DNA from: Bugula neritina
Lineage: Eukaryota; Animalia; Bryozoa
Reading direction: 5' to 3'
DNA: 64,000 nucleotides
Assembly: GCA_964035545.1 (NCBI GenBank)
Contig: OZ037769.1
Coordinates: forward strand, 744,001-808,000
Of this stretch, positions 1 through 60,800 are shown in pieces; position 1 is the stretch's first letter, and each line of letters opens with the position of its first letter. A program made the translations under genes and the position numbers. The notes beneath the pieces were generated by a model. That model was not told the DNA's origin. It saw nothing but the letters and a program-made list of their open reading frames with translations, and ran no database searches.

Positions 1-1280
1 TGACCACGGTAGTATCATGAGGATGGCAGGAAATAAGGTTAGCGGACCATTACTGTGTTTACACAATTGGAATGAAAAACCAAACATCAGCATAAACTGA
101 TGAGCCCTTTAATCCCGGCAGCAATAAACTACTGCCTCCTGATATCTTAAACATGATTGGTTCAGCTGCAGCTGCATGAGTTTTTACTTAAATTAATTTA
201 TTAGAAATACTTAAATTAAGTTATTAGAAATAAAAACTACCTTTTATCAGGCGGCAGTAGGATTTACTAGTTTAGGATGAATGTAAAATGCAAACTTCCC
301 AAAATGAAAACAGCTGGTAATTTATGTAATTATTGTAAAGCTGCAGCTCACAAAAAATTATGTGGACTCAAGTTGATTAGTAAATATCTGCAAGAATAGC
401 AGCTGACATAAATAAAAAAATTAAATCTTTTTATAAACCAGATGTAAGTTATAACTATAGTCTATTCGTTAGACCTGACCGATAGCGAATGGTTAAGGGT
501 GTGCACTGACATTAATAACTTACTCATTGCATAACCACTATGAGGGGTGAAGACCAAGTGAGCAGCATTATTTTACTACAAGCAGCAAAATACTAAGAGC
601 AGAGCTGCCTGGGGAATTCCTAAGCTGCTTGACATGGTGGGTAGAGTAACTTCAAGCAGTGAAATTACTCTGCAGAACTCATATAATATATAGAGCCTTT
701 CTGGAGATCTGCACTGCAATAAATGAATGTCAAAACTATGGCAAACTAGTCTGAGAAAAGTAGCTGTTTTATCCTACGAACTCATATAAACCTCCCTCCC
801 CCTCCCTCCCCTTCCCCCCCCCCATATTCTCACTACTTGATCGTTTGTCTTGTCTCCAGAGTTGAGAGTCTCAACTCAAGTTGGAAATCAATACAGAGTG
901 ATAGCAACTCATCTTCTCACACTCACTTGTATGAAAGGAGACGTTAATTTATTAATTGAAAGACATCCGAGTCCGTCAACAGGACACTTGGGGCAAGGAA
1001 GTGGAGCTATTAGCTACGAGTAGGCATTGTTACATACAGTCATACCCTCTTGATGAGAGTCATCAGTATTTCGTATTGATAGGGGTGTACCACACACCAC
1101 CCGACTGTTCAAGATGAAAATACACAGGCTATGCTGGTTTGAGGAATATAGTGAAGATAAGAGAGAAGTGACATCAATCAAGAGTTACTCTCTCCTGCAT
1201 TCTCAATGGTTCAACTAATATAATAGAGCTAGCATCTCCAGCACAGCAATTGCTAAGTAAGTCGACTCCAACACAAACCT

Positions 1281-1378
1281 TTCAAGTTAGCTCAAGTAAT
1301 CTATTGATTTAAGTTAGCTCAAGTAATCTATTGATTCAAGTTAGCTCAAGTAATCTATTGATTTAACTTAGCTTAAGT
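1281..1378. repeat. 27-bp tandem repeat, about 3.5 copies
   Basis: Unit aagttagctcaagtaatctattgatt(t/c) starts at 1284, 1311 and 1338. Confidence 0.85.
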
Positions 1379-2199
1379 CAATCTTAACCAAAGTACAAGT
1401 ACTCCATGAAGTAGACATTTTAGCAGTTAGCCAGTGCACGTTTAGCAGATTAAACAAGAAGAATAAATTGATATCTTGAGCTAGTGACCCACGACTTGGG
1501 CTTAGCTCTGCAACACTAGACCGTGGGTGGTAGAGTGTTGGTTTACTGGATAAACAAGCAGGTCGGTTACTACATATACATTATACATCTTGGAGTTGCC
1601 TCCCCCAGTGATAGCTACACTAACATATGCCAAGTATTATTGCATCAAAAAAGTACTATACAGGCAGATGCAGCTTTTAGCAGGTTTTAAAAAGAAGATA
1701 ATTTCTAAATTCCAATGACAAAATGTTCAATACAGACAACAATTGTGCTAGTAATTATATTTTAATTTTGTGATAGTCTCATTGCGTGAATAGAATACTT
1801 GGTGTAGAACAGGTGAGAAAGTAGAAACAGACACACAGACAGACATATTGATAGGAGAGCTCTTTGCCTGCACAGAAATAGCCTTACCTGCAGTGAGCAT
1901 GGAGTTGTGCATCCTTAGACCTCCGAGCTGCATCTGTCTGCCTGTTAGTCCTACAATATGATACGTAGTTACGTGGGCAGACAAAATGAGACGTCTTCGT
2001 ACACAACTTGATGTCAGATCAGTAGAAGTAGAGAGGATATTTACCAGGAAGTGAAAAAGGAAGGTCACACAGGGGTCACCGCGTCAGATCAGATACTTCA
2101 TTTCTAAGCCACACCTCTCAGGCTATACTAAAATGTCAACAAACAACTCATTTGTAAAAAGCACATTAGCTACATCTAGAATATGGTTCACAGTAGCCA

Positions 2200-2312
2200 C
2201 TCTCTCCGCCCCACCCCCTCTCCACCTCTCCGCCCCACCCCCTCTCCACCTCTCCGCCCCCCATCTCCACCTCTCCGCCCCACCCCCCCTCTCCACCTCT
2301 CCGCCCCCACCA
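2200..2312. repeat. C-rich imperfect ~24-bp tandem repeat (G-quadruplex-prone on the minus strand)
   Basis: ctccacctctccgccccacccc repeated 4-5 times; it explains the spurious Pro-rich ORFs at 2133 and 2183. Confidence 0.8.
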
Positions 2313-3752
2313 CAATGTTCAGTTTCTTTGCCGTTAAAAGAGTCAGGTACAGATTTCCTGCACCTGAAATTAAAACAGGAAGATAGCAGACCAGTTGAAG
2401 TTCACGAATAAAAGTATCAGGTGTGTATAATATTAAGGTATAGCAAAGGCGGTTATGTTACTACTACTGATGGATCTTTACAAAAGATGCTGAAAAACGG
2501 GACAAATGTTAAGTAAAGTAAAGGTAGTTTATAGGCTTTCTGTCAGTTTTGTTTATCTCTAGTTGATGAACACACATCTGTTTTTATTGTTTATTTATTA
2601 GAAGTTGTGTTGTTATTGCGTCATCACCTTACTTTGCTTTTAAACTTTTCTCTGTCGATAATTGTAATCTCTACAACGATGACTAAGAGTTTCCAATGAT
2701 GAAAATTATCTTAGCCAAGCTCAAGAGATTTGATTTTATGCAATTGTACTTCACATCGAGAGCGAAATCTGTTTCTTCTATTTAAAGTGGAAACAATTGT
2801 AAATGAATTGTAGAATTAAATAACAAAGTTGATAGGGAGATGCAGAGCTGGTGTAGTTGTAGTTGGACAGGAAGAGAATGTAACATAACAAATACTTTTA
2901 GGAGTCATGAGACGACATCTGCCGTTCAGCTGGTGCTGAGCTAGTATAACTGAGGAGACAAGAACAATCTAAAACATAGGCAAAAACAAACCAACAGCAG
3001 GCATACTCGGTGTATAGGGATGGAAAATAAATTATAATGCAACATTTCCAACTTGAAACATCACAGCAATAATTGACCATCAAGATTTCTACTAAATGCA
3101 GTTATTATTGTGTAAACAGGGAATGCGTAAATATGGTGTGCCCTCATATGTAGAAGATTAAAGCTGAATATTATCAAATTGATAGAATTGTCTAACTAGT
3201 ATTATTGTTGGTTAGTGAATTATTTATATTTCGACATGGCTGCATTTTAACTAAATTAACTGTTCATGTTCTGCTATATAAAATGTTTTTTGTTTACTTA
3301 CATTGAATTCGTAACCTTCACATATAAAGTAGCAACCAGTGTTGAAGAATATTTAATTTTAACAACAGAATGGCATGCTCCTGTTGATTTTGTATGCCTT
3401 TATAAAAATATTTGCTAGTTTGGTAAAGTGATAAGTAATGTAGTATTTTTTTCCTATTTATCTTCATAGGGTGCAAAATTGTACAGCTGTTGCACTAAAG
3501 TAGCTGAGGAAAACTAGCAGTGATTTTAGCAATGCTGATAACTAAACCACGAGACAGATTTAGTTTATTAAAGCTGTATTTTTGAAGATTTGATGATGAA
3601 TACAAAATATTGGGTTTTGTATTAAGAGTAGATAAAAAGAAAACTTGAAGATGAATATCAGAGCAAAAATGATAAAATACAAATGTACACAATGGAACAC
3701 AGAGTGAACCATCAACTAGCTGAGTCAATACTCTCAAGCAGAGTTACGGATG

Positions 3753-5759
3753 TCAGTAGCCACCATAGCCACCTCTATCCTCATAATCTCTATGACTACT
3801 GGATTGATCATGACCATATCTATAACCAACATCTTTTGAAGATGGAAAATTACCTTCTTGGGCATTTTGATATATCATATTGAGAGCAACATTGAATGGA
3901 TCATTTGGATCATCCGATTCTTGCTTGATCATCTTAAAAATCTTACTCTTTTGCCTCTCAAGAGTATCATTCATTTCTCGAGCGAGTGCTTCTTTTTGAA
4001 GTTCTAAAGCTTTATCCATTGCACTTCCGGTGAGCTGACTCAGATTAGATAAGGTTTGCATTTGGCCAAAGTTATTTGTACCAGACAGCTCTTGATTTCC
4101 TCGAGCTAATTGCATTAGATCTTCATCAACAAGCAATGAATCAGGGCCATTTCCAAGCAGGGACTTCGGAGCGTCTCCAAGTAAACCTTGTTTATGACCA
4201 GGAACTTGGTTGTGAAGTTTATCTTCATTTTTTCGCTTAATGCGCCCGAATCTGTCAACAGTTGAAGTACTTCTTGATCTGCGTCTTCTATCAAAAGAGT
4301 CTCGATTTCTCGACCGAGATCTCCGTCTTTCCCGAGATCTTGACCTTCGCCTTCTAGAGCGAGATCGGGATCTTCTTGTTCTTGATCTATAATGATGATG
4401 AGATTTTTCCTGGGAAGATTCATATCGAGGACCTTGTGAGTAAAATCTAGAAACTGATTTTGGATTGGATTGAGTATTTTCATGAGATGGAGACTTGCGG
4501 ACCAGTATATCGGGATCTCTATCATTTTGGGGTGGCGACATTGACATAGTATCATCTTGTTCAGCTTTGCTTGCATTCAGGGAGCCAAGAAAAGCACTTA
4601 ATGTAAATGAACCGTGCGTCTTTTTATTTTCTTCAAGTTGGTCTTGTGAAGATTGAATCTCCGAACGTGGTACATGTACTGCTTGGTACTTGGGAACACT
4701 CGATGTTGAAGCAGTTTTACTACCTGAACTGAAACGCCTTTGTGGGGAGCCACGATTCTGTGATGATCTACTTCTATCTCTAGATGACCTACTTCTATGC
4801 CTAGATGACCTACTTTCATGTCTAGGTGACCTACTTCTATATCTGGGTGACCTACTTCTATGTCTAGGCGACGCGCTATTACGCCTTGGAGATCTGCTGT
4901 ATTGCTTGGGTGACTGACTCTTTCTTCGACTAGAATCTGGCTTAGCCTCATCCCCAGCGTACTCCAAACCCTTTGTAACAGTTGCTACAGATTTCAAAGA
5001 TAAATCAGGTTTCCCCTTAGCCTGCTGTGATTCTTCCCTTTTCTTGATACTAAAGCTAATGGAACTAGAAGATTTAATCTGATGTGACTTTCTGAGCCAT
5101 TCTGGACTACGCTTGCCTTGCTTAGACTTTCTCAAATTTTGGGCAAGTTCAACATTAAGAACAGTGGAGCCTTGGTTGGTGAGATGCAATCCATCTTTTA
5201 AGTAAACATCTTTCAAAATGTGGCGACCCCTTTCTTGAACAAACACCTTATTAGAAAGTTGGCATGTAACAACCCCATTCTCACAATTGATTTTTTCAAT
5301 CCGAGTATTTACTTTAGCCACATATTCATTGAGCTTTATTTGCATTGTTTGATAATGTTGCTTTAAGTCAAGCTTTCCGGTGATTCCATTTTTGAACAAA
5401 AACTGGTTATGCTTGACAAAACTCATAGGAGGAAACGTGCATAGCATAGGCAAAATATTATTTTCTTTTAGTGATTTTATCCCCCAGTCAATTTTTGACA
5501 TAAGAAGCGAATCACCGTTCTCCCGAAGAACAACTTCCCGATAACCTTGCGCCTGTTTTACCTCTAAAAGGTCGGTGATGCCAAAGAAAATATAGCAACA
5601 AACACGATAGCCTTGCAGCGAAGATGCATTCATGAGTTTAAGTGCAGCCGCTATCAAGTCTTCAAACTTTCCATTGGGAACGATTTCCTTTTCATCAAAG
5701 ATTCTGAGGTCCAGATTATTAGCCATAGAATGCCCAACAAACATACATCTTTCAGGAAC
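3753..5759 (-). CDS. 2007-nt terminal exon: SGNH/GDSL hydrolase-like domain followed by an RS-rich region
   Basis: Acceptor ttttccag|GTT at 5759, in frame with the 696-aa ORF. Motifs FVGHSM (block I-like), IFFGITDL (block III-like) and DGLHLTNQG (block V-like), then RSRSPR heptads and an RS tract. Confidence 0.8.
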   Translation of the reverse strand, partial: VPERCMFVGHSMANNLDLRIFDEKEIVPNGKFEDLIAAALKLMNASSLQGYRVCCYIFFGITDLLEVKQAQGYREVVLRENGDSLLMSKIDWGIKSLKENNILPMLCTFPPMSFVKHNQFLFKNGITGKLDLKQHYQTMQIKLNEYVAKVNTRIEKINCENGVVTCQLSNKVFVQERGRHILKDVYLKDGLHLTNQGSTVLNVELAQNLRKSKQGKRSPEWLRKSHQIKSSSSISFSIKKREESQQAKGKPDLSLKSVATVTKGLEYAGDEAKPDSSRRKSQSPKQYSRSPRRNSASPRHRSRSPRYRSRSPRHESRSSRHRSRSSRDRSRSSQNRGSPQRRFSSGSKTASTSSVPKYQAVHVPRSEIQSSQDQLEENKKTHGSFTLSAFLGSLNASKAEQDDTMSMSPPQNDRDPDILVRKSPSHENTQSNPKSVSRFYSQGPRYESSQEKSHHHYRSRTRRSRSRSRRRRSRSRERRRSRSRNRDSFDRRRRSRSTSTVDRFGRIKRKNEDKLHNQVPGHKQGLLGDAPKSLLGNGPDSLLVDEDLMQLARGNQELSGTNNFGQMQTLSNLSQLTGSAMDKALELQKEALAREMNDTLERQKSKIFKMIKQESDDPNDPFNVALNMIYQNAQEGNFPSSKDVGYRYGHDQSSSHRDYEDRGGYGGY

Positions 5760-8700
5760 CTGGAAAAGATAGTAGAACAAATTGTAGTCACTAAGCCTTT
5801 GGTGGCAAACGAGACTGGTCGGACATACTGTAAGCCAGTGCATGATAAAATTGATGTATTACTAATTCGGATACTTTATTTAAATGTTTTGTCAATCATC
5901 CAAAATGAAATAAATGGCGACAGCCAATGTAAAAATTGTTTGAAAACGGCACTGCCACATGGTAACAAGATGTGCCATTGTAATCAGCCATACAGTTTCT
6001 TAAAAACAGTTCATCCGATACTGCAGCTGGCTGCAAGTTCCAGTTCATTGCTAGATAATGTTTTCAAGTATAAAAACCAGAAAATTACCCGCCATGCCGC
6101 ACGTTAAGACAATAACACTGGCCATTACGATATCGCCCAACCTATATCGCCCAAAATAGAGTTTTTGATTATGATTGTTTTTATTTTTCATCACAACTTA
6201 CAATGCATATGTTTGTATCAGGAATTGAGGCGACACATTTCTTCCCTCCCCTCACCATAAATCTCACATTATTATCAATAAATCGCGCTTAAGAATGTAA
6301 TTAAGTTTTTCTTCAATAAAATAACTTGGGGGAAAAACATATTAGCACCTACGGCCTCCATAACATATAAAAAGCACAGCAACGGCAAATGAATATTTAG
6401 TAATGCACAAGCGCATTAAATAGCCAGTGTCCCAATACTCTGCAGTTGTTTCCATAGTAAATATAATATTAATAAAAACTTTAATTTAGAATATAATAAT
6501 TTGATTATTAAATGCTCAGTACTAAATAGTAGTAAATGGATTATTATACATAAATCATATGATAATCAAAATAGTGAAAGCTTTTAAACTGTATCTGCTA
6601 CGTCGAGACACGCAGTGACAATTGAAACGACTCATAAGCAAAAATGGAAATTATCCACACAGATTCGCCAGATGTGAAGGTTGACCGACGTCGAATCGTT
6701 GATATAAGCATGAGAGGCTATTGCTACGAATATCTGCATACGACCGAGTATCAGCGTCGGACTGATTTAATATCCGCTGAAACATTTGTTGACTGATGCA
6801 CTGTATACGTAGTCTAGTAAAATATCCGACTGAGAGAGTTTAGTAATGCGTCTGACTCGGTACTCTGCACTAAAGATGCAGAAAGAATGAATTATGACTT
6901 ACAAATTGTCCTTTTTCTTTGTAAAGTCCAGTCTCGTTGTCATAGGCAAATCCCGTGAATGATTCAACAGAAACTTTTGCTGTAAAAACATATTGCAGTA
7001 ATAAATAATTTGTAATGTAATAATGCATAATGAACAAATTAAAACGAATAATGGGTAATGCAGTAACGAATAATGGGTAATGCAGCAACATATAATGTGC
7101 AAAAATGCATAATGGATAATGTAGTAACACATAATGGGCAATGATGTATAACTATTACAGCAATAATGCATAGAGAGTAATGCAATAACACATAATGAAT
7201 AATGTAAAAATGCATAATACATAATGCCGTGAGTAAACTATTTACAAGAATACAATCAGTATTTGGACACAGTAAGACATACCAACAGCGGCGGCAGCAG
7301 CTTCAGCGGCAGCTTTAGCTTTGGCAAACTCCTGCAACAACATCCAACAGTAAATTAAGGTTTCCCTTATATCTGTAGCCAGCATAATAAGTATCAAGTA
7401 GCGCACATGGTAGTAGAAGTGCAAGTAGGACGGTGTGAGTGGGCCCTAACTCAGCTAATGAGAATACAATTCGTATCAACTTAGTTAGAAGTTAACGCAA
7501 CTCGGAACACCAAGGCAATAAAATCAGATAATTTTTATTAATCTTTGACTTCACTAGTATCAAGTTTGCTGAAACTATCCCAGGGTCACAGTCTGACTGG
7601 TTCAAATGAATCAACTATACCACGAGCTGATAATTAACAGTGAGAGAAACACACCTCAGCTTTCTGCTTACGAATCTTATCCATGGCTTCTTCTGCCTTC
7701 TTCCTCATATTCTCTTGCTTCTCCTTCAACTCCAGATCCCTTCTGAACATCTACAAATATATTCTAATCCTCACAAGATATCCCTTCTGAACATCTACAA
7801 ATATATTCTAATCCTTACAAGATATCTCTTCTACACATCTACAAATATATTCTAATCCTTACAAGATATCTCTTCTACACATCTACAAATATATTCTAAT
7901 CCTCACAAGATATCCCTTCTGAACATCTACAAATATATTCTAATCCTCACAAGATATCTCTTCTGAACATCTACAAATATATTCTAATCCTTACAAGATA
8001 TCTCTTCTGAACATCTACAAATATATTCTAATCCTCACAAGATATCCCTTCTACACATCTACAAATATATTCTAATCCTCACAAGATATCCCTTCTACAC
8101 ATCTACAAATATATTCTAATCCTCACAAGATATCCCTTCTGAACATCTACAAATATATTCTAATCCTCACAAGATATCTCTTCTACACATCTACAAATAT
8201 ATTCTAATCCTCACAAGATATCCCTTCTACACATCTACAAATATATTCTAATCCTCACAAGATATCCCTTCTACACATCTACAAATATATTCTAATCCTC
8301 ACAAGATATCCCTTCTACACATCTACAAATATATTCTAATCCTCACAAGATATCCCTTCTGAACATCTACAAATATATTCTAATCCTCACAAGATATATC
8401 TTCTGAACATCTACAAATATATTCTAATCCTCACAAGTTATCTCTTCTGAACATCTACAAATATATTCTAATCCTTACAAGATATCCCTTCTACACATCT
8501 ACAAATATATTCTAATCCTCACAAGATATCCCTTCTACACATCTACAAATATATTCTAATCCTCACAAGATATCTCTTCTACACATCTACAAATATATTC
8601 TAATCCTCACAAGATATCTCTTCTACACATCTACAAATATATTCTAATCCTTACAAGATATCTCTTCTACACATCTACAAATATATTCTAATCCTCACAA

Positions 8701-11700
8701 GATATATCTTCTGAACATCTACAAATATATTCTAATCCTCACAAGATATCCCTTCTGAACATCTACAAATATATTCTAATCCTCACAAGATATCCCTTCT
8801 GAACATCTACAAATATATTGTAATCCTCACAAGATATCCCTTCTGAACATCTACAAATATATTCTAATCCTCACAAGATATCCCTTCTGAACATCTACAA
8901 ATATATTCTAATCCTTACAAGATATCTCTTCTACACATCTACAAATATATTCTAATCCTCACAAGATATCCCTTCTGAACATCTACAAATATATTCTAAT
9001 CCTTACAAGATATCTCTTCTACACATCTACAAATATATTCTAATCCTCACAAGATATCCCTTCTGAACATCTACAAATATATTCTAATCCTCACAAGATA
9101 TCCCTTCTACACATCTACAAATATATTCTAATCCTCACAAGATATCTCTTCTACACATCTACAAATATATTCTAATCCTCACAAGATATCCCTTCTGAAC
9201 ATCTACAAATATATTCTAATCTTTACAAGATACCTCTTCTACACATCTACAAATATATTCTAATCCTCACAAGATATCTCTGCTACACATCTACAAATAT
9301 ATTCTAATCCTCACAAGATATCTCTTCTACACATCTACAATTATATTCTAATCCTCACAAGATATATCTTCTACACATCTACAAATATATTGTAATCCTC
9401 ACAGTATATCCCTTCTAAACATCTAATACCCTCACCACATACAGTATACAGGAGTTAAAGTGTCACTACATCGAGTACCTCTTGACGTTGCCGATCAGCC
9501 TCCTTCTCCTTTTTTCTCTGTTCCTCTGTCAGCTTCATCATCTCCTCTTTCTCCTCTTTGGCTCGTCTAACTGACTCAAACTGCTCTTTGGCACGGGAGA
9601 TACCAGCCATTCTGTCAACACAACTCCTCACATGACTCATCACTGGTCATCTCAGCACAATGAAAATACCATACAACCAAAATTAGTTGATATTCTATAA
9701 CAGGTGGGTTATCTACTTACTTATTACTAGTAGACGGTAAGTTACTTAACTTGAACGATACTTACATTGTCTTAAGTGTGTTCTTGGCGTAGTCTAACAG
9801 CAGCAGTTTCCCGTCCACCTCAAACGGCTCCTGATTGGAGAAATAGTCTACTATTCTCTTAGCATCAGCAACTGTGTCAAACTCCATGAAGCCATATCTA
9901 CAAATTATTATGATAATATCTACAAATACCTGCAACGACATCTACAAATAGCTACAATGAAATCTACAAATAGTAACAATCAGATTTACAAATGATTACA
10001 ATGAGATCTACTAGTAACAGAGTAGACAGGAAGTGATGCGTACCCGAGAGAGATGCTGGTGGCGAGGTTTCTCATGACGTAGCAGCTCTTGGGTTCCAGA
10101 GACGTGATTTCAGCCAGAGAATCTAGAATCTTCTTCTCGTCAGAGAGACCATCCAACCCTCTGAGGAGAACAGCTGAAATATAATGGTAGAGTTAGTACT
10201 GTATACTCACAGTGTAACTGATATGATTGGTACTGTATACACACAGTGTAGCTGGTAGGATTGGTACTGTATACACACAGTGTAGCTGGTAGGATTGGTA
10301 CTGTATACTCACAGTGTAGCTGGTAGGATTAGTACTGTATACTCACTATTGCAGGGGTTCAGTCCAAGCTGATCTGATCCATCTTCAGATGCTCTACTGG
10401 GTTTTGCGGGAGAACGTGGGAGTCCGGGTCTGGGCACCTCCACGAACCCTCTACGACCGCCTCTTTCTATTTCTCCGCGGCCACGACCCAACGGAATGTC
10501 ATCGTCAAAGAAATCTCTAGGACCGCCTCTTTCTATTTCTCCGCAGCCACGACCCAACGGAATATCATCGTCAAAGAAATCTCTACGACCACGGAATGCC
10601 TCTTCTGGAAAACTCCGAAAAGGAGGGCGTCTCTCTGGAAAATCCTCAACAGGATATCCCCTTGGAGGATACCTCTCGGAAAAGGGGGCTCTTCTCTCGT
10701 ACTGCTCTACAGAAATCAACCTATCAAATGTTACAAAACATAGAGAATGATATACCAACCATAATAGTCATACAGCAGCGAGTTATAAGTTATAGTTTAT
10801 GGAATACAAGTTTGGGGTTAGAGGCCCTGGTGCAACTCCCAAACTTCTCAGACCTTGCAAAAGGTAACACGTTAAGTATCACTAGAAAGCTTATAACCAG
10901 TACATCTGTACTTAGTAGGAATGTGACCCTTGGGTGAATATTTGACCCACTGTGAACAGATGTAAGTATATTAGTGCAGGTAGACTTACCTCTCAGGGGA
11001 AACTCCCGTCTGGGCTCTAAGAACTCCTCGGGGTCATACATGTCACCACCTCGACCTTGACCTCCATTACGAGCTGCAAGAGAGAAGAGTAGCATTGAAG
11101 TGAACTGTTGATCTCACCAAGTGGACAGAAACCAAAGATAAAGAATACAAATAAAATGAAGCTGGCAGGAAGGTGGTTCTAACCTGGAGGTGCGACAGGT
11201 CCGGGCCCACCCATGAGGTGGGGAGGTCTACCACGCCCACCGAAAGGTGGTCTACCTCTATGGCCCGGCCCAGGTGGACCACCTGGTCCATCATGAATCC
11301 TGGCCAGGCCAGCTGGTCCAACTGGTCGCGGTAACTCACACCTGAAGCAGGCTTCTCTTATGTCCACATTGAGGGCTCCACACTAGATAGTATAACAGAC
11401 TAGTGTAATATAATACAACATAATATAATACAATAATATAACGCAATAATATAATATAGCATAACATATTATAATATAGTATAATATAATATAATATAGC
11501 ATAACATATTATAGTATAATATAATATAGTATAACATATTATAGTATAATATAATATAGTATTATAATAACATAAAACGGTAAAATGCAATATATTAACC
11601 ACAGATCTGCGTCACGGGGCAGATAAAATAGTAGGAGGGAGGGGCCTACTGTGAGACTATATAGAAAGAGGGGCAGAAAGTTGGAGAAGTCTATTCTAAC

Positions 11701-13663
11701 CTCGCAACCCCAAAGAGCTTCTGAGGGTTCGTTCACATACATCTGTGAGTAGAGTAGAGCGCTATTGTGGCCTGGCTGAAGGCTGACACAACCCTGAAAC
11801 AGCATGAGAATAAAATGTTATTATGTAATTATATATTATGTAATATAACACAATATAATTATGAAGCGTAATATAATTCAACACAAGGTTAAGCCAGAAA
11901 AACTACTACACTAAAATACACACTACTATATCGCATAATAAAAATGTTTTACTTGAAGAGTTTATATTTTGTCTATTGTTGAACTGACTACTAGTTCATT
12001 AGAAAGACACACCTTTTGCTGTTCAACCCAATCTACCGCTTCTTTGATGTTGAAGAACAGAACGTGGGCAAACCCTTTGCCACCGGGACCTGAAAACAAT
12101 TTAATAACCTTAGTTTAAGCAGATTATGTCTCCATGACAAAAGACTAATTTCTATTCATTATGTCGAGACATGAAATACGAGTATTGCTAACACACCTCC
12201 TTTTGCTACAAAACGGATATCTTCAAAGTTAACGCCCATATTGTTCAGCCTCCTCGCCAACTGTAAAAGTGTACAATTTCATTTTGTTGTATGAGTATAA
12301 TTCAGGTATAATTTACTAACACAATTATAATCACTTAAACACTTGGAATTTTCAACCTCTCACCAATCTAAATGTAATATGATTTTATTTCTGGATTTAC
12401 ATTTCCTAAAGTTTTATATGTTGCAGATAACTTTAGTGATCAAATAAAACTTAAAAGAACACTAAAATACTAAAATATGTGTGACTTGAACTTTATTAGT
12501 CTAGTACCTGTACTGATAGTAATATTATATTAATACTTACAATAAATTCCACATTATAATACACTTTACAAGTTCAAGTTATACTAAAACTTATAATTAT
12601 ATTTATACATTATAATTATTATTTTAAATATATTTATAAGTTAAACTATAACAGTACAACTATAAAACATAGTTTACAGTTATTGTCATTATTATTATAT
12701 TTAATTTTATAGTGCGCTACCCCTATTCATAGCCATAGTCATACTTAAACACACACTATAGTGATACTAAAAGTAACACTAATACTTATAGCTATATTTC
12801 AGTAACTCAAATTGAAATATTAAATCGCTAAACTTAAAAGACTAACAGTGGCTGTAACTGTAAGAATCAAATGAAAATTGTAGTGTTGAGTTTACCCAGT
12901 GGTCCCTGTAGTGTATTGGTTAGCACACTTGCTTGCAAGCCAGAGGTCTCGGGTTTGATTCCCAGTGGGGGCAATTATTTTTCAAAAATTAAACGTAAAA
13001 CTAAATGTAACTGTGAAAAGTAAAATTTATAATAAAATTATATATAATCATAAATTAAATTCAAAATTAATTAGTCTTACGAGTTAGTGCTACGATAAAT
13101 TGAAATACTAATAGTAATACTAATACTAGTAATACTAATAGTAATACTAATACTAATAGTAATAGACATAGTAACGGTAGCAGCAGACTCAGACTAAGCC
13201 ATTCTCATTCTGAGTTTTAGTTAACTGTTTAGTATGGAAAAGTCCAAATCTTAGTCTAAGAGTAAGAGTAAGTCAAAGTGATGTACGGTTACTGACTAAC
13301 ACCAAACAGTAACTCACAACTGTAAGTGTAACACTAGTGACTAACCGAGTAACTCTAGTCTCTATGACTAAAAATAAAACTAAGTAAAATTTAAAGTCTA
13401 GTATCACTATCAGTATCTTATATCTAAGTTTTACGACTTGCCTCTGAAGTAAAGTCTGATACCTGTCGATACCTGTCGATGTTATTTCCACACTGGACCT
13501 CCCTAGAGGGAAGAAGGGGAGTCTGAGACTCAGACTGGGAGTGAGTCTCACTCTCAGTCAGAGTTCTGACTAAATGACTTACCCGACTTTCATCTATGTC
13601 ATCGGGTAACTCTTTTATAACAACATTTTTTGTCGGATTTTGGTACTGCCATTTGGTCTCCAT
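3753..13663 (-). CDS. RBM5/RBM10-like RNA-binding protein with an unusual C-terminal SGNH-like domain and RS domain (14 coding exons, about 1193 aa)
   Basis: Exons 13663-13583, 12260-12197, 12089-12013, 11793-11701, 11382-11184, 11073-10990, 10706-10347, 10173-10044, 9897-9766, 9611-9479, 7750-7655, 7331-7283, 6979-6903, 5759-3753; all GT-AG and phase-compatible. RRM1 (TKNVVIKELP...KGFAHVLF), RanBP2-type zinc finger (WGCECGALNVDIREACFRC), RG/Pro-rich linker, RRM2 (NTVLLRGLD...GYGFMEF...EVDGKLLLLDYAK), charged coiled coil and an OCRE-like start (GFAYDNETGLY) match the RBM5/10 order. The link to the last exon is inferred from phase. Confidence 0.85.
4760..4885 (-). repeat. Coding 21-bp repeat (7-aa RS heptads)
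   Basis: Variants of gatgacctacttctat..cta encode HRSRSPR/YRSRSPR/HESRSSR/HRSRSSR/DRSRSSQ. Confidence 0.8.
7735..9424. repeat. 44-bp minisatellite, about 38 copies, containing the 3' splice site and first codons of exon 7750-7655
   Basis: Unit gatatcccttctgaacatctacaaatatattctaatcctcacaa (period 44, e.g. 7777 to 7821). The minus strand reads ...tatttgtag|ATGTTCAGAAGGGAT. Confidence 0.95.
10190..10346. repeat. 34-bp intronic repeat, about 4.5 copies, starting at the splice donor
   Basis: Minus-strand unit gtgagtatacagtac(t/c)aatcctaccagctacact begins exactly at the GT at 10346. Confidence 0.85.
12902..12973 (+). pseudogene. tRNA-like pseudogene or tRNA-derived SINE head, antisense in intron 1 of the RBM5/10-like gene
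   Basis: GTCCCTG TA GTGT ATTGGTTA GCAC A CTTGC TTGCAA GCCAG AGGTC TCGGG TTTGATT CCCAG TGGGGGC A. It has an A-box-like TAGTGTATTGG, a degenerate B-box GGTTTGATTCC and a T-run at 12978-12982. The anticodon loop is only 6 nt and the stems are mismatched. Confidence 0.65.
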
Positions 13664-15016
13664 CACAACGAGCTTTTAAGCCTGTGTGTTTGAGTTCCTG
13701 TTTCTCTATCAGTATCACTGTGCAGACCTTGTGGTTATAGCTTATTTTTGCTAAGCGCCATTTTCTAGTCCCTTTATCATGGCCTTGAACTTTATTCATC
13801 CTTGGCTTCCACCTTGACCTTAGGACGAGGGTCACTTGGGTCTTTTTTATGAGGATAGTTTAAATTTTAGGGTTCGGGGATTATCTTCGACCTCCGAACC
13901 AAATAATCTTGGACTCTGATCTAAAATGACCGTTAATCCCTAGAGATGCCGTACTACTAATAATGATTATAATTAAAAATATGTTAAAATGTATATTAAA
14001 TGTAATACTTAAGTTATGTCAGCAATCATGGCAGTATTAGTATGAGTATCATACTGAATCCAACATCGAGTCCCGTCGTCATACTCATAGTCATAGTGAC
14101 TGTGATGAGTGACCTGAAGGTGAAAGTGATACTCATACTCATACTGATACTCATAGTGATAGTCATAGGATAGTGATAGTCATAGTGATGGTCATACTGA
14201 TAGACGATAGTAATTGTAAATGTAATATAGTCATACTGATGTCTAATAGTAATAGTTAGTGATACTGAGTCTGATACTGATAGTCAAACTCAATAGTCAT
14301 ACATAATAATTATATTGATACGCAGTCTCAATCAGTAGATTGATATTCGTAGATGATAGTCCCGTGTCTAAAAAAAGTCATACTCATAGTGATAGTGATA
14401 CTGACAGTGATGCTGATGGTGAGATACTAAGAGTAAGACTAGTCATACTCATACCCATAATAATACTGATGCTCATAGTCATAGTCATACGTTTAGTGGC
14501 TTACACTTACAGTCGCAGTGATTTACATTTTCATACCCATCAAGACGTATACCGTACTCCATAGTGATAGTAATAGTCATAAAGATAGTTATATCAGATA
14601 TATCATGAGTATGTGAAGTTATTAAATAATTAGTACGGACACTCTTGTGAGCTCATTTTAGGTTCATAGTTTATAAGTCTGCAGTAATTGTATATTGGGG
14701 AATACCAATGGTAACATAAGCAATAGTAATAATGATACTATGTTGCTATCACTATAAATATCAAACTTCGTTTGAATTTAGTGTTAGCCATGTCAATGCT
14801 AATATTATTTTCATCAATGATTAATTCTGATATTAACTTTTAATAGTATTATGGTATCATATAGTATTATATTAGATAACATCATCATTGATAATTTTTT
14901 ATCATCAATGATTTTTCAAAACGTAAATACCATCTCCAGTATTGTATATAAAGTTGTCGCCTCTGCCATCTATTTGGGGTTGCCTACCCAGTGATGTTAT
15001 TTGTTTATAGGTAAAC
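13664..15016. promoter_or_regulatory. Probable shared head-to-head promoter region of the RBM5/10-like gene and PLGRKT
   Basis: Divergent start codons at 13663 (-) and 15017 (+). An acceptor ttgtttatag| at 15010 implies an upstream PLGRKT UTR exon. YY1-like CGCCATTTT at 13756-13764. Confidence 0.5.
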
Positions 15017-38400: not shown

Positions 38401-40814
38401 GTATGTTACATTATGTTACAGAATATACGTTATATTATATACTTTATATGTTATATAACAAAGTACACTTTATATCATATACTAGGGAGTAATCTCCCCT
38501 TAGACTGTTGACACATACCCAGTTGTTAGGAAGAGAAGGGTTAGCTTGAGTTCCACAATCTCTCCAGATATAATAGTTCTCATACAAGGGATCTCTGGCT
38601 ACGCTCCTCTCAAACCAGGTATGTTTGTCACTCGAGTGGTTCGGAATAAAGTCAATAACCAGTTTGAGACCTGCAAGGACGAACAGACAGATATAATGGA
38701 CGAACAGACAGACACCAACGAAATAAATACACTACATAATAAAAATATAGTATAATATTAATATAAAACAATATAATATAACAAACTACTTGACAAATGT
38801 AATACAAAACAATAAATTATAATAAATACAATATAAACATAGAAAAATATAATACACTACATAAAAATATAATATTAAGATAATAGAATACACTACATAA
38901 TAAACATATTATAATATAAAGATAATACAACACACTACATAAAAATATAACATATGATATATAATATATATATAACATATGATATAAAGAGAATACACTA
39001 CATAATATATAACATATGATATACAGAGAATACACTACATAATAAACACACAAGATATGTGAATATTCACCCTCAGCATGTATCTTCTCTAGCAGACTAT
39101 CAAAGTCCTCCAGACTGCCGTACCTTCCGTCCACATCTCTGTAGTCACTCACGTCATACCCATAATCCTCTACTGGACTCTTGTAAAACGCTCCTAACCA
39201 TATAGTCTCTACATGTAGCCCCTTGATGTAGTCCAACTTGCTCTTTATACCTGCACACAACATAGAACTAGCTCTCAGACTACACTGTGAAAAAAACAAA
39301 ACTGAGAGACACTGTGATACAAACTTTATAAACTGAATTATAGTATATGAGTAGTAACCCTTTTCTTGTAAACAAGGCAATGTGCTGATTCTTAATAAGC
39401 GGATATTAAGGTTTATAGAATATAAATTGTTATAAAAAATTTATTTCAGATTTAGTAGGTCATGTGACAAACTGAGCAGTAAACAGGTCATGTGACTGAC
39501 TGAGCAATAAGCTGGTCATGTGACTGAGCAGTAAGCAGGTCATGTGACTGAGCAGTAAGCAGGTCATGTGACTGAGCAGTAAGCAGGTCATGTGACTGAG
39601 CAGTAAGCAGGTCATGTGACTGAGCAGTAAGCAGGTCATGTGACTAAGCAGTAAGCAGGTCATGTGACTGACTCATACCAACCATTGAGGTCACCACTAC
39701 TATCCCCATCAGAGTCCAGGTAAGTTGCAGGGTAAATGTGATAGAAAGACGTCTTTTGCCACCATTGCATTGATGGTCGAAGTTTGCATCTACATTTGTA
39801 AAAGATGTTAGTAGAAAACATGCTGTGGCTGAAAAATCACACCATCTTATCATGTTGACATTTGTGTGACCTATACTTTGAACTGAGATAAATTTCAAAT
39901 ACTTTAACTAAAAGGATCAATTTACATTTCACTCACACACTTACTCGCACGCACACACTCACTCACTCACTCACTCACTTACTCTCCCAGTCTCTCTCTC
40001 ACTCACCCACTCACTCACTCACTTACCAACCAATAATATACAACAACTAAGCCCAAATCAATGAGCCATACCAATCACATCAGAACTAACCGAGGATGTG
40101 TCACAGTGATGTATATAACAGAACCTAGAAGGGCCACCCACGACCCCCAAAACACCAGCAGCAGTATCTTTCTGGCTCTCTTCCACCCTGGAGTGCCAGA
40201 GTGGTGGAGAACCATATCTTTGCCCATTCCAGCATATGGTGGCTACAATATACTTTAGATATACTACGTAATAGCTACTAATTACTAGTTAGTAGCTACT
40301 AGTTACTAAAGAGACCTCAATACAGAATACTTTAGATATAACAGTTACTAGTTACTAGCTACTAGAGAGAGAGATATAAATAGTGACTTGTGTCACAGCT
40401 CCAACACACAGACAGACAACAAGTATAACTCAACCTGATGACTCAACAGTAGGAATTGTCTACTCCCACATATCTCACTGTGTTCATTTTAGTTATTACT
40501 TGAATATTAAATGCTTGAAGATTTGTTTAAAATATCGATATTAAAAATACAACTACACTTGAAATTATGACAATAGAATTTGAGTAGGACAGTAGGGAGC
40601 ATTAGACAGCGAAAGATGCAGTTATCCATCTTGATCAAGTTCATTGTTTTGTCTATAACCTAAGATTACAATAGAAACTTACTGGCATCTCTTTGGAGGT
40701 GAAATCACGAGCCTCAGATACCTTTCCCTTTACATTAGTAGACAGTCCCGTTACGTCATCAGCAGACGTAGTTTGAGACTCAGTATCCTTCATATTTTCT
40801 TCGTTGTGCGACAT
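35442..40814 (-). CDS. SLC3-family amino-acid transporter heavy chain (rBAT/SLC3A1-like; GH13 alpha-glucosidase-fold ectodomain), 13 coding exons, 635 aa
   Basis: Exons 40814-40683, 40242-40091, 39789-39683, 39250-39071, 38670-38519, 38234-38109, 37942-37826, 37699-37593, 37414-37219, 36859-36707, 36484-36365, 36108-35957, 35655-35442. PYAGMGK motif, single TM (KILLLVFWGSWVALLGSVIYITV), post-TM Cys (HPRC), WWQK..FYHIYP, DYGYDVSDY, DFIPNHSSD and YYGDEIGM. Confidence 0.9.
35710..35770 (+). repeat. 11-bp repeat GGCAGGTGAGT, about 5.5 copies
   Basis: Directly visible in the last intron of the SLC3 gene, on the antisense strand. Confidence 0.85.
36160..36378. repeat. 28-bp repeat, about 7-8 copies, of exon end plus splice donor
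   Basis: Minus-strand unit TAACGTACAG|GTAAGTgtctactacttg; period 28 (36303 to 36331). Confidence 0.9.
38265..38430. repeat. 24-bp intronic repeat, about 7 copies
   Basis: Unit tatattatattacagaatatactt; source of ORFs 38242 and 38244. Confidence 0.85.
39458..39672. repeat. 24-bp intronic repeat, about 9 copies, beginning about 10 nt after the donor
   Basis: Unit ggtcatgtgactgagcagtaagca. Confidence 0.9.
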
Positions 40815-48536: not shown

Positions 48537-51500
48537 ATGGCAAATCACAGCAATAATGGCTCCTTTTTGTTTTCATCAGAGTCTGTTGGAGAAGGACATC
48601 CTGGTATGCCCTAAGGCTAAAGCTTAAATTTTAAACTGAAACTCAGACTGAGACTTGAAAGTTGAAAAATTAAGTTTAACTAACTTTTAATTTTATTGTA
48701 GTTTCAAGTGTAAAGACAGTTGAAACATAAGTGAACATCCCGTTATAATTATTTATTTTAATTTTCAATGATTCTAATTACTATTGCTATTAGGGAATGT
48801 TTATACTTATATTTATTAAGTTAGTCTTCAGATGCAGTTTAGGCAGACAGAACATGTGCTTGAAGTGACAACACCATTAATGCTGAACAGCAAGGTGCTA
48901 ATTAATACCTGCCAAAATATCTGCTGAGTCTACTTAAATCATCTTCTAGCACCTGATTCAATGTGATTGTTGATATTAGAGCCCAGACTGGTGCTGAGTG
49001 GAACTCATTTGTCTTGTAAACAATTTGTAGACAAGCTTTGTGACCAAGTCAGCGACGCAGTGCTAGACGCCCATCTGGCACAAGACCCTGAGGCTAAAGT
49101 AGCCTGTGGTAAGTATTATTTAATTTTGATTAAAATTTTGGTGAAATTTGCAAACTGATCACTTTGTGTTGAAGTCTCCAAGGAGTTATATTATTATTAC
49201 ACGAGCTATGAATTGTGGGTGTAGAAATATACTGATGTCTTCTAATACAGAGGCGATAACCAAGACTGGAATGGTAATGTTACTAGGGGAGATAACCTCT
49301 AAAGCCGTAGTGGATTATCAGAAGATCGTGAGAGATACAATCAGAAAGGTTGGGTACACAGACAGTAGTCAAGGTAAATACGTTTTCATTCTTATTATTA
49401 TATATCAACATGTAGGATGTGTCAGCCAATGTCATGCCACATTTCAGCATAAAATTTAGAATGACTAGTTGGCTTTTGGTCCACAAAATTTACTTCAAAA
49501 TAATTTAGAGTTTTTTAAAACTACTTTAGCTATTCCAATAAATTATTTTGCTCAACTAAAACATGGAGGATGATCATAAGCTGTTAATATAAAGTGGGCT
49601 CAACCTTTTAAACATTCAGGCTGTTTATAATCCTTATATCATATGGTGCAGTTATAATATTCTGTAACTTGTAAAACACTCAGGTTATGATTTTGAGTCG
49701 CATAATTTAAGTATGTTCAGCTATTATTTGATAAGTTGTTTAGTGTTTCAATAACAACCTGAGCTACATGCAATGTACACTTAATATTCATTGTGTATTA
49801 AAGAACCAATAACTTGTAAAGTCTATCCATTAAACTATACTAATATTCCCCGACAGGTTTTGACTATAAGACATGCAGTGTGACCTTGGCCTTAGACGCT
49901 CAGAGTCCCGACATAGCCAGTGCTGTTCACTTGGAGAAGAGCGAGGATGAACTCGGTGCTGGCGATCAGGTGACGTATTCCCACCGCGTGGAGAAGATAA
50001 CACCTCAATATTTCACATGTTCCACCTACACACTCCATTCTCTCTGTACACTGAATAGCTACTCTGGTGGTCAGAGATGATGTTCTCTCTCTGTATTGTA
50101 GGGGTTGATGTTTGGCTACGCCACTGACGAGACGGAGGAGTGTATGCCCCTCACTATTGATCTCTCCCACAAGCTGAATATGAAATTGTCGGAGTTACGC
50201 AAGAGCGGGCAACTTCCGTGGGCTAGGCCAGACACTAAAACTCAGGTTACTAGTCAGCTCTTTGACCTAATCATGACATTGAACTCTATTCTCATCTCCG
50301 TACAACAGATTAATAAGCACCAAATGTGTCTCATCTTGGAGAGAAATGTGGTATTAGTTTCATTATATAAAATATCAGGTTCCTGTTGGGTATTCCCCAG
50401 TTAATAGGTAGTTGTGTTGGTTTTGTATCAGAAATAAGTTAGTTTCTCTATTCTAGTCTAACAACTGCATTTTAGAAGTGAATAATGAGAAATAGTAAAA
50501 TAGTAGTCGGTTATGTTGTCATCCATTGTATCAGTTATACTGACATGACGCAGGTGACTGTAGAGTACATGTTCCAAGATGGCGCCTGTCTTCCTCTCAG
50601 AGTACACACTGTTGTTATCTCCACTCAGCACGATGAGACTGTCACTATGTCACAACTCCAAGACGACCTCATGCAGAAGGTCATCAAGGTCGTCATTCCT
50701 TCTCATCTTATAGACAATCAGACGATATTTCACCTCAACCCTTCCGGAAAGTTCATCATAGGCGGCCCCATGGTTCGTGGAAACTTTCTTTGCACTGAGT
50801 CAAGTCCTTGCAGAGAGGATAACTCTCATTTAGTGGTTGTTTACTTGTTAGGGAGACGGGGGATTGACAGGAAGGAAGATCATTGTAGACACGTATGGTG
50901 GGTGGGGAGCTCATGGGGGCGGAGCTTTCTCCGGCAAGGACTGCTCAAAAGTAGACAGGAGCGCCGCTTACGCCGCTCGGTGGGTTGCCAAGTCGCTGGT
51001 GAAAGCTGGCCTGTGTAAACGCTGCCTCCTTCAGGTACTGTTTTCTCAATACTTTTACTAAAGACTGTAGACTAGGAATACTGAATAGTAGATAGGTTTG
51101 TATGTGGGTTTCCACCTTCTTGCAATATTTTTAGAATCTAAGCCTTTTTATATATATAGCATAGTACGGCAGCAAAAATACTTCACATTTATGTGACATA
51201 ATGGATGGGCTGTGTGGGTCACAAGAGATGGAGTTAATATTTGTCTTATATTTCTAGATTTCATATGCAATAGGGGTGGTGGAGCCTCTCTCCCTAGCCG
51301 TCTTTCACTTTGGAACCTCGGATAGAACCGAGGCAGAGCTGCTCAAGATTGTCAATGATAACTTCGACCTCAGACCTGGAGCCATGATAAGGTATCTGCT
51401 TGATCTCTTCTAGCACTTCACTATTCACATTGACTTCTACTAGCACTTCACTATTCACATTGACTTCTACTAGCACTTCACTATTCACATTGATCTCTAC

Positions 51501-57882: not shown

Positions 57883-60800
57883 TCTGTTTCAAGCTGTTCT
57901 TCAATAGTCTGAGGTAACACGCCAGACATATCGCCTGCCGCTAGTTCTGCAGGTAACAACTTCCTATATTCGCTATCATCATGTTTACCTCTATTAGTAT
58001 GACTACGTGCATTCTTTGATAATGGAGGGAAGAATTTAATGGCCGCCTACAAGATTAAAGCAAGTTTCAAACAATTTTTTTTTTAAATTGAATACGGTTA
58101 AAGTTAAAGATTGGCAATATATAGGTGGCACCATCAAAATAGCTGGTAACAAACCTCTAATAGCAAAATCTATATATATATATATTATATATTTACATGT
58201 TTCTGATTTCACAGCTCGTACGATGCGGGGGATACTAACCTTACTAATACTGCCCCGTGACCGCACCGACTCTTTACAGGAAGTAGCTGAGGCCGTCTCC
58301 GCCTCTTCCTGTGCAGTCATAGTACTATATCCGTGGTCACTACTTTCAGTTGCCGTGACAACAGGTCTGGGAGGGACGTAGTGCTCGTTTAGTTGGTAGG
58401 GGGAGATGTGAGCTGCAGCTACCAGAGGTCTGTTCAATTCCATCAGATTCAAGTGAGCTGCATATCGTAATATAAGAGTAGTAATATAGTAATACAAGAG
58501 TAGTAATATAGTAATATAAGAGTAGTAATATAGTAATATGAGAGTAGTAATATAGTAATATAAGAGTAGTAATATAGTAATATGAGAGTAGTAATATAGT
58601 AATATAAGAGCAGTAATATAGTAATACAAGAGCAGTAATATAAGAGTGGTAATATAGTAATATAAGAGTAGTAATATAGTAATATAGGAGTAGTAATATA
58701 AAAATACTACAGTAGTAATATAGTAATATAAGAGTAGTAATATAGTAATACTATAGTAGTAATATAGTAATACAAGAGTAGTAATATAGTAATACGAGAA
58801 GCATTACCGTGAGATGGACCAGCTAGAGAGGGGAGTTCATGGTACACGTAACCATCCTGCTCCTGGTTGCTACTCGTGTCGGGAGAGTCGCCCTCTGGTG
58901 GTGACCTTCGATGCACGCTGTGTCTGTAGCAGTAGACACCCAGCACTACGAGCAGCACGATGCAGAGCACGGCTCCAGTTACCGGACCCACCGGAATATT
59001 CTTCAGCAACAGGTCAGGCGTCTCCTCAACACCAGACACTGTAAGAAACACAACTAAGCATGACATCATGTTGGCACGGTGAAGTAATGTAGAGTTGATA
59101 AGTTCTGGAAGCATTGACATTGCCTACAAACCTTTGAGTTGATCATTGTAAGGAGTGCGGGCACCGAGTACACCCCCGAAGCACATCTGCTGCACATCGC
59201 AGTAGCCTGAGGAGAGTGGCGTGACGCTGTCTGCGTTGGTGTGACACCAGGAGCAGCCGACGAGGCCCAGACAGGAGAGTCTTGTTGAGTGGCGACTGCA
59301 GGCCGGCTCCACACACTGACCTAGCATGTCGGAGATAGTGTGTGGCAGTTTGAACAGGTGTCCACTCTCTGCCGGCGTGTCACAGTTGTCATGTGACAGC
59401 TCGGTGAGGTCAACATCACCTGTGCAAGGGTCAGAGGTCAAAGGGCACTCGCAAGGACATTCACATTCTGCTTGTTCCATCCGCTGACAATTCAGGCAAA
59501 GTCTGTCCGTCTGTAATACACAACTATGTAGGTCAATATTATGTAGGTCACTACTATATATGTCACAATTATGTGGGTAATGACCTGCATACAGCATATA
59601 GTATACAGAATGATGTCACAAGGGCACATATACTACAGAATGATGTCACAAGGGCACATATTATACAGAATGATGTCACAAGGGCACATATACAGAATGA
59701 TGTCATAAGGGTACATAGTACTTACAATACTACAAGGACAAAAAGCTGACATCCTCAATTCACACGTCTCGTTCACCATGACTATGAAGGTGTTACTCCC
59801 AGGAATACTGGCCAGTTGGTATCTCACGCACTGCTCTCCTGACTTCAGGTTTGTCAGAGTTCTACTCAAAGCTGTGTTGAACTGTAAGTAGGAAACCACA
59901 CAGAGTCAGTTAAAGAAATAGTATGTAATGGAACAAAGGTACATACACAGTGCGGGACACACTCTGTACCTCCTCCCCCATCCTTCTGTAGAGAAAGTCT
60001 ATACTGGAGCAATGTACTCATAGTATGGCAGAAGTTGAAACACGAAGTAAATAAAATATAACCTACCTGATAGTATCGCTGAATGGTGCTGTCAGAGAAG
60101 CTGTTGCACATCTTCTTTACAACCAGTGATTTGTGTCCTAGAATGTCATTGGCTATCAGCGGCTCCTTCAACCAATAAAGAACAATTATTATCAACCATG
60201 TATATTTAAATAATATTTAAGAAGAGGAAGAGAAAATATAAAATGTAATAATTGATATTGAATTCACTTACCATGTGTGTCAGATGTTGCTCTTCTTCAG
60301 ATTTCTGATACCCAGACAACTTCAAGTTGGGGTGGGTAATGATGTACCCCCGACTATCAAAGACGAAGCAGCGAAGATCTTCAGCTTCACACATGGGAAT
60401 AGCTTCCCACACAAGTCTTTCAAAATAAGAGGCTGGAAAGTCAGCCCCCATTACAGCAGCCACGGGATCTTGAGGAGTGTGAAGGGATGCAGATCTGTGG
60501 GCAGATAATATGGCATGATTTCACGGAGGAGAATGACATGACAGAGGAGAATGACATGACAGAGGAGAATGACATCACGGACGAGAATGACATTAATTCT
60601 AATTAAATTACTTTCTTTCCAGTGCGTGAGATAAAAGATGAAAAGCAGTCCGTATTTAAAAAGCAGAAAACGATCACACAGACACTTTTATTTAAACCAC
60701 GAATATTCCATTTGGAGAAGACACGTATAGCTAGAATAATATACTAGATACACAGCTGACCCTCTGACTGACCTTCCCTCATAGACGGAGTGCGCCATGC

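Follow-up and report, generated by a model that had tools for sequence, protein, structure and literature searches.

The window analyzed here, a 64,000-nucleotide (nt) stretch of the Bugula neritina genome (G000:C5:744001-808000 in a 216-Mb source assembly labelled G000, whose contigs C1, C2, C4, and C5 are cited below), carries a minus-strand gene that joins the RNA-binding front of an RBM5/10-type splicing factor to an SGNH/GDSL domain related to a retrotransposon open reading frame 3 (ORF3). The gene, present as one copy in the B. neritina genome, comprises 1,193 codons across 14 exons, from 13663 down to 3753; with phases checked exon by exon, the chain is in frame, has GT-AG splice sites, and contains no stops. 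The predicted order is RRM1, a RanBP2-type finger, RRM2, and half of an OCRE, followed by an intronless exon with the SGNH domain, arginine-serine (RS) repeats, and LLGxxP motifs resembling those that bind PTB. An earlier note, made from the letters alone, had placed such a chimera at 3753-6979: its boundaries for exons 13 and 14 hold, but that interval covers only the final two exons, the whole gene being 13663-3753.

The architecture is real, conserved, and undescribed; transposon exon capture and the recruitment of an SGNH domain into a ribonucleoprotein (RNP) protein each have a precedent. The gene has gone unrecognized in databases, being split in the B. neritina annotation, labelled "uncharacterized" in Watersipora subatra, and invisible to Pfam. 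Our literature searches found neither a description of an RBM5/10-SGNH fusion nor a report of a retrotransposon esterase domesticated as a host fusion. A chimeric, retroelement-derived origin of the gene is, in our assessment, very probable.

The fusion junction and its conservation

Exon 13 (6903..6979) encodes the N-terminal half of an OCRE (Pfam OCRE E 0.027, with profile positions 3-16 of 52 matched) and ends at the ancestral phase-0 OCRE intron, with a gtaagt donor after 6903. The acceptor before 5759 (ttttccag), likewise phase 0, opens the 668-codon, intronless terminal exon 14 (3753..5759). The two phases, the length of the last exon, and the exon with only the start of an OCRE had all been read correctly in the earlier note. 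Intron 13, the fusion intron (5760..6902; 1,143 nt, GT-AG), is spliced out in a contig from run X2 (runs X1, X2, X6, and X9 were guessed to be RNA), which omits exactly the segment from 6903 to 5759, the short side measuring 32 nt at a depth of 22. Contigs from X6 and X9 terminate precisely at 5759. The predicted 6903-5759 junction is thus seen spliced. The RNA-type contigs differ from the window by about 6% in DNA, and the window therefore probably represents a sibling type within the B. neritina species complex.

Full-length joined proteins were searched with the database protein P0184 only. This W. subatra RefSeq entry (XP_067929586.1, 1327 amino acids [aa]) contains the finger, RRM2, half OCRE, and SGNH domain connected through the identical junction, the SGNH domain being 72% identical to that of B. 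neritina. Seven further lineages (from public assemblies and runs, presumably bryozoan) have an AG at the corresponding codon, which precedes the first Met by 11 residues. For five of the seven this acceptor is an in-frame TAG, so that splicing is required for the invariant GHS motif of the SGNH domain to be translated. An upstream half-OCRE exon, ending in a phase-0 gtaag donor, is visible in four lineages (L008, L009, L012, and L048), two of which (L012 and L048) also show the RRM2 exons at 71-77% identity. The eight SGNH domains compared are 59-87% identical, with pN 0.07-0.29 and saturated synonymous sites. The sequence comparisons thus indicate a fusion conserved in at least nine lineages, with its SGNH domain under strong purifying selection, and together with the spliced contig and the SGNH fold described below they bear out the chimera of splicing-factor modules and SGNH domain that had been proposed.

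No shared sequence was found among the fusion introns of five lineages, and a scan with the bryozoan pattern returned no lineages beyond those already in the set. A search for RRM2 among proteins of 730-2322 aa recovered P0184 alone; this word-based search missed known RBM5/10 proteins and is uninformative on range. ESM Atlas held no cluster with the joined architecture (best 0.79).

Exon 14 is annotated on its own in B. neritina as KAF6039017.1, a member of the cluster of P0001, a protein to which the SGNH domain in the window is 98% identical. It might accordingly be mainly a separate single-exon gene, the junction resulting from occasional read-through splicing. An in-frame upstream Met is available in B. 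neritina, and intron 13 is spanned by lower-depth contigs in X1, X6, and X9, at about a quarter of the exon depth or less in two of these runs. This coverage may be intron retention or pre-mRNA. The in-frame stop at the acceptor in five of the seven other lineages, the conserved residues ahead of the first Met, the conserved donor, and the fusion model of W. subatra in RefSeq all contradict a separate gene, a reading that is already largely refuted and to which we attach next to no probability. Retention of intron 13 would end the protein 10 residues past the half OCRE, and autoregulation by this means is conceivable.

Three points count against the complete gene model as drawn. Junction support consists of one contig, from a single run that was guessed to be RNA and represents a sibling type with about 94% identity to the window; the RNA-type contigs reach exons 13 and 14, not exons 1 to 12; and the W. 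subatra model XP_067929586.1 is without RRM1.

Sources of the two halves

The RRM2 of the fusion is of RBM5/10 type, and the best PDB matches of an ortholog are RBM10 and RBM5 RRM2 structures. The exons for RRM1 and the RanBP2-type finger, the latter with its C-x-C spacing, are homologous to those of a second RBM5/10-like gene at C4:20.619-20.626 Mb, yet fall below Pfam detection exon by exon (no RRM or finger was detected by Pfam on single exons). This C4 paralog, a separate RBM5/10 of the kind that the earlier note had suggested looking for in related genomes, has RRM1, finger, RRM2, a full OCRE, and a C2H2 finger. A phase-0 intron interrupts its OCRE 18 residues past the aligned Ser/Thr-Gly, which is where the donor at 6903 lies in the fusion gene; the fusion thus made use of an intron that the duplicated gene already had. 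A second OCRE half, C2H2, YRDRA-type motif, and G-patch are all absent from the minus strand of window positions 1-14000; the earlier note, too, had seen neither a C2H2 finger nor a G-patch.

The conventional paralog (L040, L041, and L068; G000:C4:20618900-20625700, minus) seems to end about 20 codons after YRDRA, and a G-patch was not found within 30 kb downstream of it. Possibly B. neritina is without any RBM5/10 that bears a G-patch; alternatively, the assembly may be faulty at this locus. A second OCRE gene, one that does carry a G-patch, lies at G000:C4:8.19-8.20 Mb (L037-L039), its OCRE likewise intron-split near the same position; it was rejected as RBM5 and looks like AGGF1, which it presumably is.

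As regards the other half, a profile built from seven orthologs matched at least 276 proteins or clusters. Among the matches listed, 143 non-bryozoan ones are short stand-alone ORFs of 136-359 aa with about 25% identity. The contigs of five such relatives were fetched, four with enough upstream DNA; in three of the four the ORF sits directly behind an ORF2 for endonuclease and reverse transcriptase, and in the fourth behind an apparent ORF2 C terminus. Metagenome pattern scans with the retroelement alignments found no relatives. The OSK domain of Oskar and the esterase of long interspersed nuclear element (LINE) ORF1, offered as analogues in the earlier note, are both structural matches (OSK Z 15.8; ORF1 structure 4c1b), but the relatives proper belong to the retrotransposon ORF3 SGNH family.

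Some of these relatives have an arrangement of their own: in the LINEs, elements without long terminal repeats (LTRs), at L051:817-5638, L053:214-5473, L072:945-5010, and L042:1080-1796, SGNH is the third ORF, behind ORF2, and not ORF1. One non-LTR element with an SGNH ORF3 has a PHD-finger ORF1. The literature searched yielded no paper on a non-LTR layout with an SGNH third ORF behind ORF2.

Within the B. neritina genome the SGNH family occurs in eight places besides exon 14, and all four that were inspected are gypsy elements. One of them (L064:2782-8239; G000:C2:26.90 Mb) encodes gag, protease, reverse transcriptase, RNase H, integrase, and a 203-aa SGNH ORF3 between identical 111-nt LTRs, and three SGNH-ORF3 gypsy copies score identically, so that the element must be recently active. 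The resident gypsy ORF3 is 22% identical to the fusion domain. In an unrooted tree of 48 rows (a subset of the 121-row alignment used for structure prediction; no outgroup, direction inferred), the bryozoan domains group together (100/99), and their sister group (99/96) contains the gypsy ORF3. Bdelloid LTR elements are known to carry GDSL ORF3s, which pass from one class of retroelement to another (PMC5408684). Judging from these sequence relationships, a gypsy donor is likely. Arguing the other way, the sister grouping unites two long branches, its gypsy row is compositionally biased, the tree has no outgroup, and genomic context is known for 5 of about 140 relatives.

The unrooted tree also leaves room for a donor other than a transposon, whether a bacterium, as proposed for Oskar, or a host SGNH gene, with the retroelements as cousins or as recipients of the host domain. 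The best solved-structure matches are indeed bacterial GDSL enzymes. At the sequence level, however, the relatives are eukaryotic-type retroelement ORFs, the genome has no other host copy, and an intronless exon suits a retro-origin; we rate such a donor as very improbable.

On the retroelement account, which is well supported, an RBM5/10 gene would have been duplicated in a bryozoan ancestor, and an SGNH/GDSL-encoding retrotransposon ORF3, most likely of gypsy type, would have come to occupy the phase-0 intron between the OCRE halves or a site downstream of it. The acceptor 11 codons ahead of the first Met would then have captured ORF3 as a new terminal exon, with the old 3' half of RBM5/10 lost. 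Exon capture presumably also produced the host-transposon fusion CSB-PGBD3. The same process is illustrated by SETMAR, in which an intronless transposon ORF is spliced in frame as a terminal exon to host domains and was then conserved (PMC9062482). What was captured in the bryozoan gene differs from both in being a retrotransposon accessory hydrolase rather than a DNA transposase, and the host gene is a splicing factor. The fish texim SGNH genes are animal genes related to CR1 esterases and linked to transposons, but they are stand-alone, Helitron-carried, and without an RNA-binding fusion (PMC4021074). The value of the bryozoan case lies partly in the visibility of its route of origin, exon capture at an ancestral OCRE-splitting intron.

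Active site and possible function

The SGNH/GDSL domain occupies 5112..5759 (216 aa) and is followed by a conserved basic extension (5040..5132). Pfam found nothing in the single sequence of exon 14, leaving the SGNH domain undetected, and gave no LOTUS or OSK (PF17182) match in P0184 or the SGNH domain. AlphaFold with a 121-sequence alignment modelled the domain at a predicted local distance difference test score (pLDDT) of 97.3, superseding a poor first fold from 7 sequences (pLDDT 62). The model matched SGNH hydrolases in Foldseek (E 2e-7), and further VIA (Z 18.1, root mean square deviation 2.6, 165 residues aligned), OatA (Z 17.2), and the Oskar OSK domain already cited; the ZfL2-1 ORF1 esterase 4c1b matched by profile (E 4e-4) as well as by structure. 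The SGNH fold suggested by the earlier note is hence borne out.

The positions given there for the motifs were verified too. Block I is GHSM (5724..5735; GHS at 5727-5735), with the candidate nucleophile Ser11 at 5727-5729, invariant in the window, seven further loci, and P0184; block III is G(I/V)TD (GITD in the window, 5571..5582), with Thr at the canonical oxyanion Asn position; and the likewise invariant block V is DGLH (5184..5195), contributing Asp189 and His192. The candidate Ser and Asp-x-x-His are invariant in all orthologs, across nine lineages; of 113 relatives, 100 retain the Ser, 108 the Asp, and 109 the His. Unfavorable to an enzyme is the oxyanion hole: its block III Asn is Thr in all orthologs (retroelement relatives mostly have Pro or Cys), and in block II an invariant PNG aligns its Asn on the family Gly, with Gly one position later. 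From sequence, therefore, a catalytic triad stands beside a non-canonical oxyanion hole; the invariance of the triad favors retained chemistry, and the missing block III Asn weakens that case. The ZfL2-1 esterase, which has Ser-Asp-His plus Gly and Asn in the oxyanion hole, is active with low turnover (PMC3905857).

With the same origin, the domain could be a non-catalytic, Oskar-like scaffold for RNA or protein, the triad being kept for structure or ligand binding. The OSK match, an isoelectric point (pI) of about 9.3 with the invariant basic extension, and the non-canonical oxyanion residues all agree with such a role; moreover, at 59-87% conservation of all positions, an invariant triad is unexceptional. 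Yet the fusion domain and the retroelement family, about 25% identical, have few positions in common, and Ser, Asp, and His belong to these; the block III Asn is missing from most members of that family as well, and the Oskar domain is listed as non-catalytic (PMC3905857). The isolated ZfL2-1 esterase bound no poly(A) despite a pI of 10.8 (PMC3905857). We regard the scaffold as possible but rather unlikely.

The tail beyond the basic extension is poorly conserved in sequence, and RS dipeptide runs are kept in all lineages. The RS repeats mentioned in the earlier note form two regions, one at 4762..4867 (a 21-nt repeat giving heptad units, with a copy number that differs among B. neritina types) and one at 4270..4388. 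Two PRI-like motifs follow at 4143..4187, GLLGDAP and SLLGNGP, candidates for binding PTB RRM2 (0.0045 expected in shuffles); GLLGDAP matches the PTB-binding PRI consensus of Raver1 and Matrin3, [S/G][I/L]LGx-hydrophobic-P (PMC4365034). LLGxxP is present in 7 of 9 lineages and [SG]LLGxxP in 6 of 9, against 0.002-0.02 expected by shuffling. There are two PTB-like genes, L082 and L083 (G000:C1:23.71 Mb and C2:20.91 Mb). The PTB ortholog is the C1 copy, the only one of the two with QNIY in RRM2, the Tyr of which we take to be the Y247 equivalent. As in Raver1 and Matrin3 (PMC4365034), the motifs stand in the disordered tail of an RRM protein, but the RRMs are unrelated and the bryozoan motifs are only predicted; their absence from two lineages, W. 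subatra and P0005, counts against the co-regulator reading given below. Recruitment of PTB through these predicted motifs is a lead only.

Compared with RBM5 and RBM10, the fusion shares RRM2, the OCRE start, and an intron position kept in the host paralog, and probably also RRM1 and the RanBP2 finger. It differs in having lost the second OCRE half and with it most of the tyrosines that, on strands 2-5, bind Sm tails (PMC5127646), as well as the C2H2, helix-loop-helix, and G-patch parts, which in RBM5 contact SF3B1 and DHX15 (PMC13041897); the SGNH domain, RS repeats, and PRI-like motifs take the place of these C-terminal parts. The fusion should therefore not act as an RBM5 gatekeeper. It may instead be a nuclear splicing co-regulator: the finger and RRM2 would hold it on pre-mRNA, the RS repeats would provide contacts with speckles and SR proteins and the PRI-like motifs a contact with PTB, and the SGNH domain would most likely have remained a module that binds acyl groups or, as a serine acyl-hydrolase, cleaves them at low turnover, its target being a partner within the same RNP. 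We infer this combination of pre-mRNA binding, tail-mediated entry into speckle or PTB complexes, and weak acyl hydrolysis or acyl binding, and hold it to be somewhat the better bet.

A bolder version is doubtful, namely that the RBM5-type domains bring to pre-mRNA a retrotransposon-derived enzyme, an active serine hydrolase or acyltransferase, which alters the acylation of a spliceosomal protein, of RNA, or of a nuclear lipid. If true, it would constitute an enzyme-based mode of splicing control and, after Oskar, a second independent recruitment of SGNH into an RNP regulator. No result of the analysis supports the RNA-targeted deacylase suggested in the earlier note.

Defense against transposons might also be envisaged, with the domain recognizing or competing with the resident gypsy ORF3 or its RNPs while the RRM and RS parts redirect splicing or retention of gypsy RNA. 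There are precedents for domesticated retroelement proteins restricting their own relatives, and intact gypsy elements with identical 111-nt LTRs and an ORF3 of the same family coexist in the genome. Identity to that ORF3 is, however, only 22%, and strong purifying selection acts on the domain, which shows no arms-race change; a defensive role is improbable.

The closest comparisons are with the retrotransposon SGNH/GDSL esterases themselves (ZfL2-1 ORF1p, PMC3905857; bdelloid LTR ORF3, PMC5408684), which share the fold, the Ser-Asp-His triad, and the 4c1b profile match, the nearest relatives of the fusion domain being gypsy and LINE ORF3s. The bryozoan domain differs in that its exon belongs to the host, exists as a single copy, is subject to purifying selection, and is joined to RNA-binding domains; it also has Thr for Asn in block III. 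Oskar (LOTUS plus OSK; PMC7250577) is a parallel with another donor and another partner: it too is confined to one lineage and joins a foreign SGNH to a eukaryotic RNP domain, but the fusion has a different N-terminal partner, retroelement rather than bacterial relatives, an intact triad, and no PF17182 match. The role of retrotransposon esterases is an open question (PMC3905857, PMC5408684), and one that has kept its triad and become fixed in a host gene of single copy makes their function experimentally approachable.

Exon structure and other features of the window

The upstream exons, all on the minus strand, account for the RNA-binding front. Exon 1 (13583..13663), the start of which is putative, contains the beginning of RRM1 and is 52% identical over 21 aa to the RRM1 exon of the C4 paralog. 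Exon 2 (12197..12260; GT-AG, in frame) carries the middle of RRM1, and exon 3 (12013..12089) its RNP1 motif, KGFAHVLF, placed by exon chaining and comparison with the C4 paralog. Exon 4 (11701..11793) ends RRM1 and begins the RanBP2-type finger (WGCE); the second finger half (C-x3-N-x6-C-x2-C) and a G/P/R-rich linker are in exon 5 (11184..11382), placed by chaining and comparison with P0184. The finger is interrupted by a phase-0 intron, and its W-x-C-x-C spacing is the same in W. subatra P0184. Linker sequence continues through exon 6 (10990..11073; exon chaining) and the R/P/E-rich exon 7 (10347..10706), which contains a 66-nt duplication and whose end directly precedes RRM2. The first half of RRM2 (exon 8, 10044..10173) is 71-76% identical to the orthologs L012 and L048 and 64% to the C4 paralog; for the second half (exon 9, 9766..9897) the figures are 74-77% and 53%. 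Three linker exons complete the series up to exon 13: exon 10 (9479..9611), charged and probably coiled-coil; exon 11 (7655..7750), also charged, with its acceptor assigned by phase; and exon 12 (7283..7331), Ala-rich. The exon 13 homolog is found in the four lineages listed above.

Intron 10 holds a 44-nt tandem array of 38 copies (7736..9425), the last unit of which provides the modelled exon 11 acceptor. The array contains 37 acceptor-like ATTTGTAG copies, 36 of them followed by an in-frame (phase-0) stop. In intron 1 there is a plus-strand tRNA-like match at 12902-12973 (Rfam RF00005, 35 bits; ARAGORN makes no call), probably a tRNA-derived short interspersed nuclear element or a pseudogene. 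A candidate polyadenylation signal, AATAAA, lies at 3564..3569; the X2 contig ends at 3572, and the X6 and X9 contigs extend further. Elsewhere in the window, exons at 38817-39380, 50485-51018, and 58036-59597 resemble what we take to be an alpha-glucosidase/amylase-family gene, an S-adenosylmethionine synthetase, and a cysteine-rich receptor, respectively.

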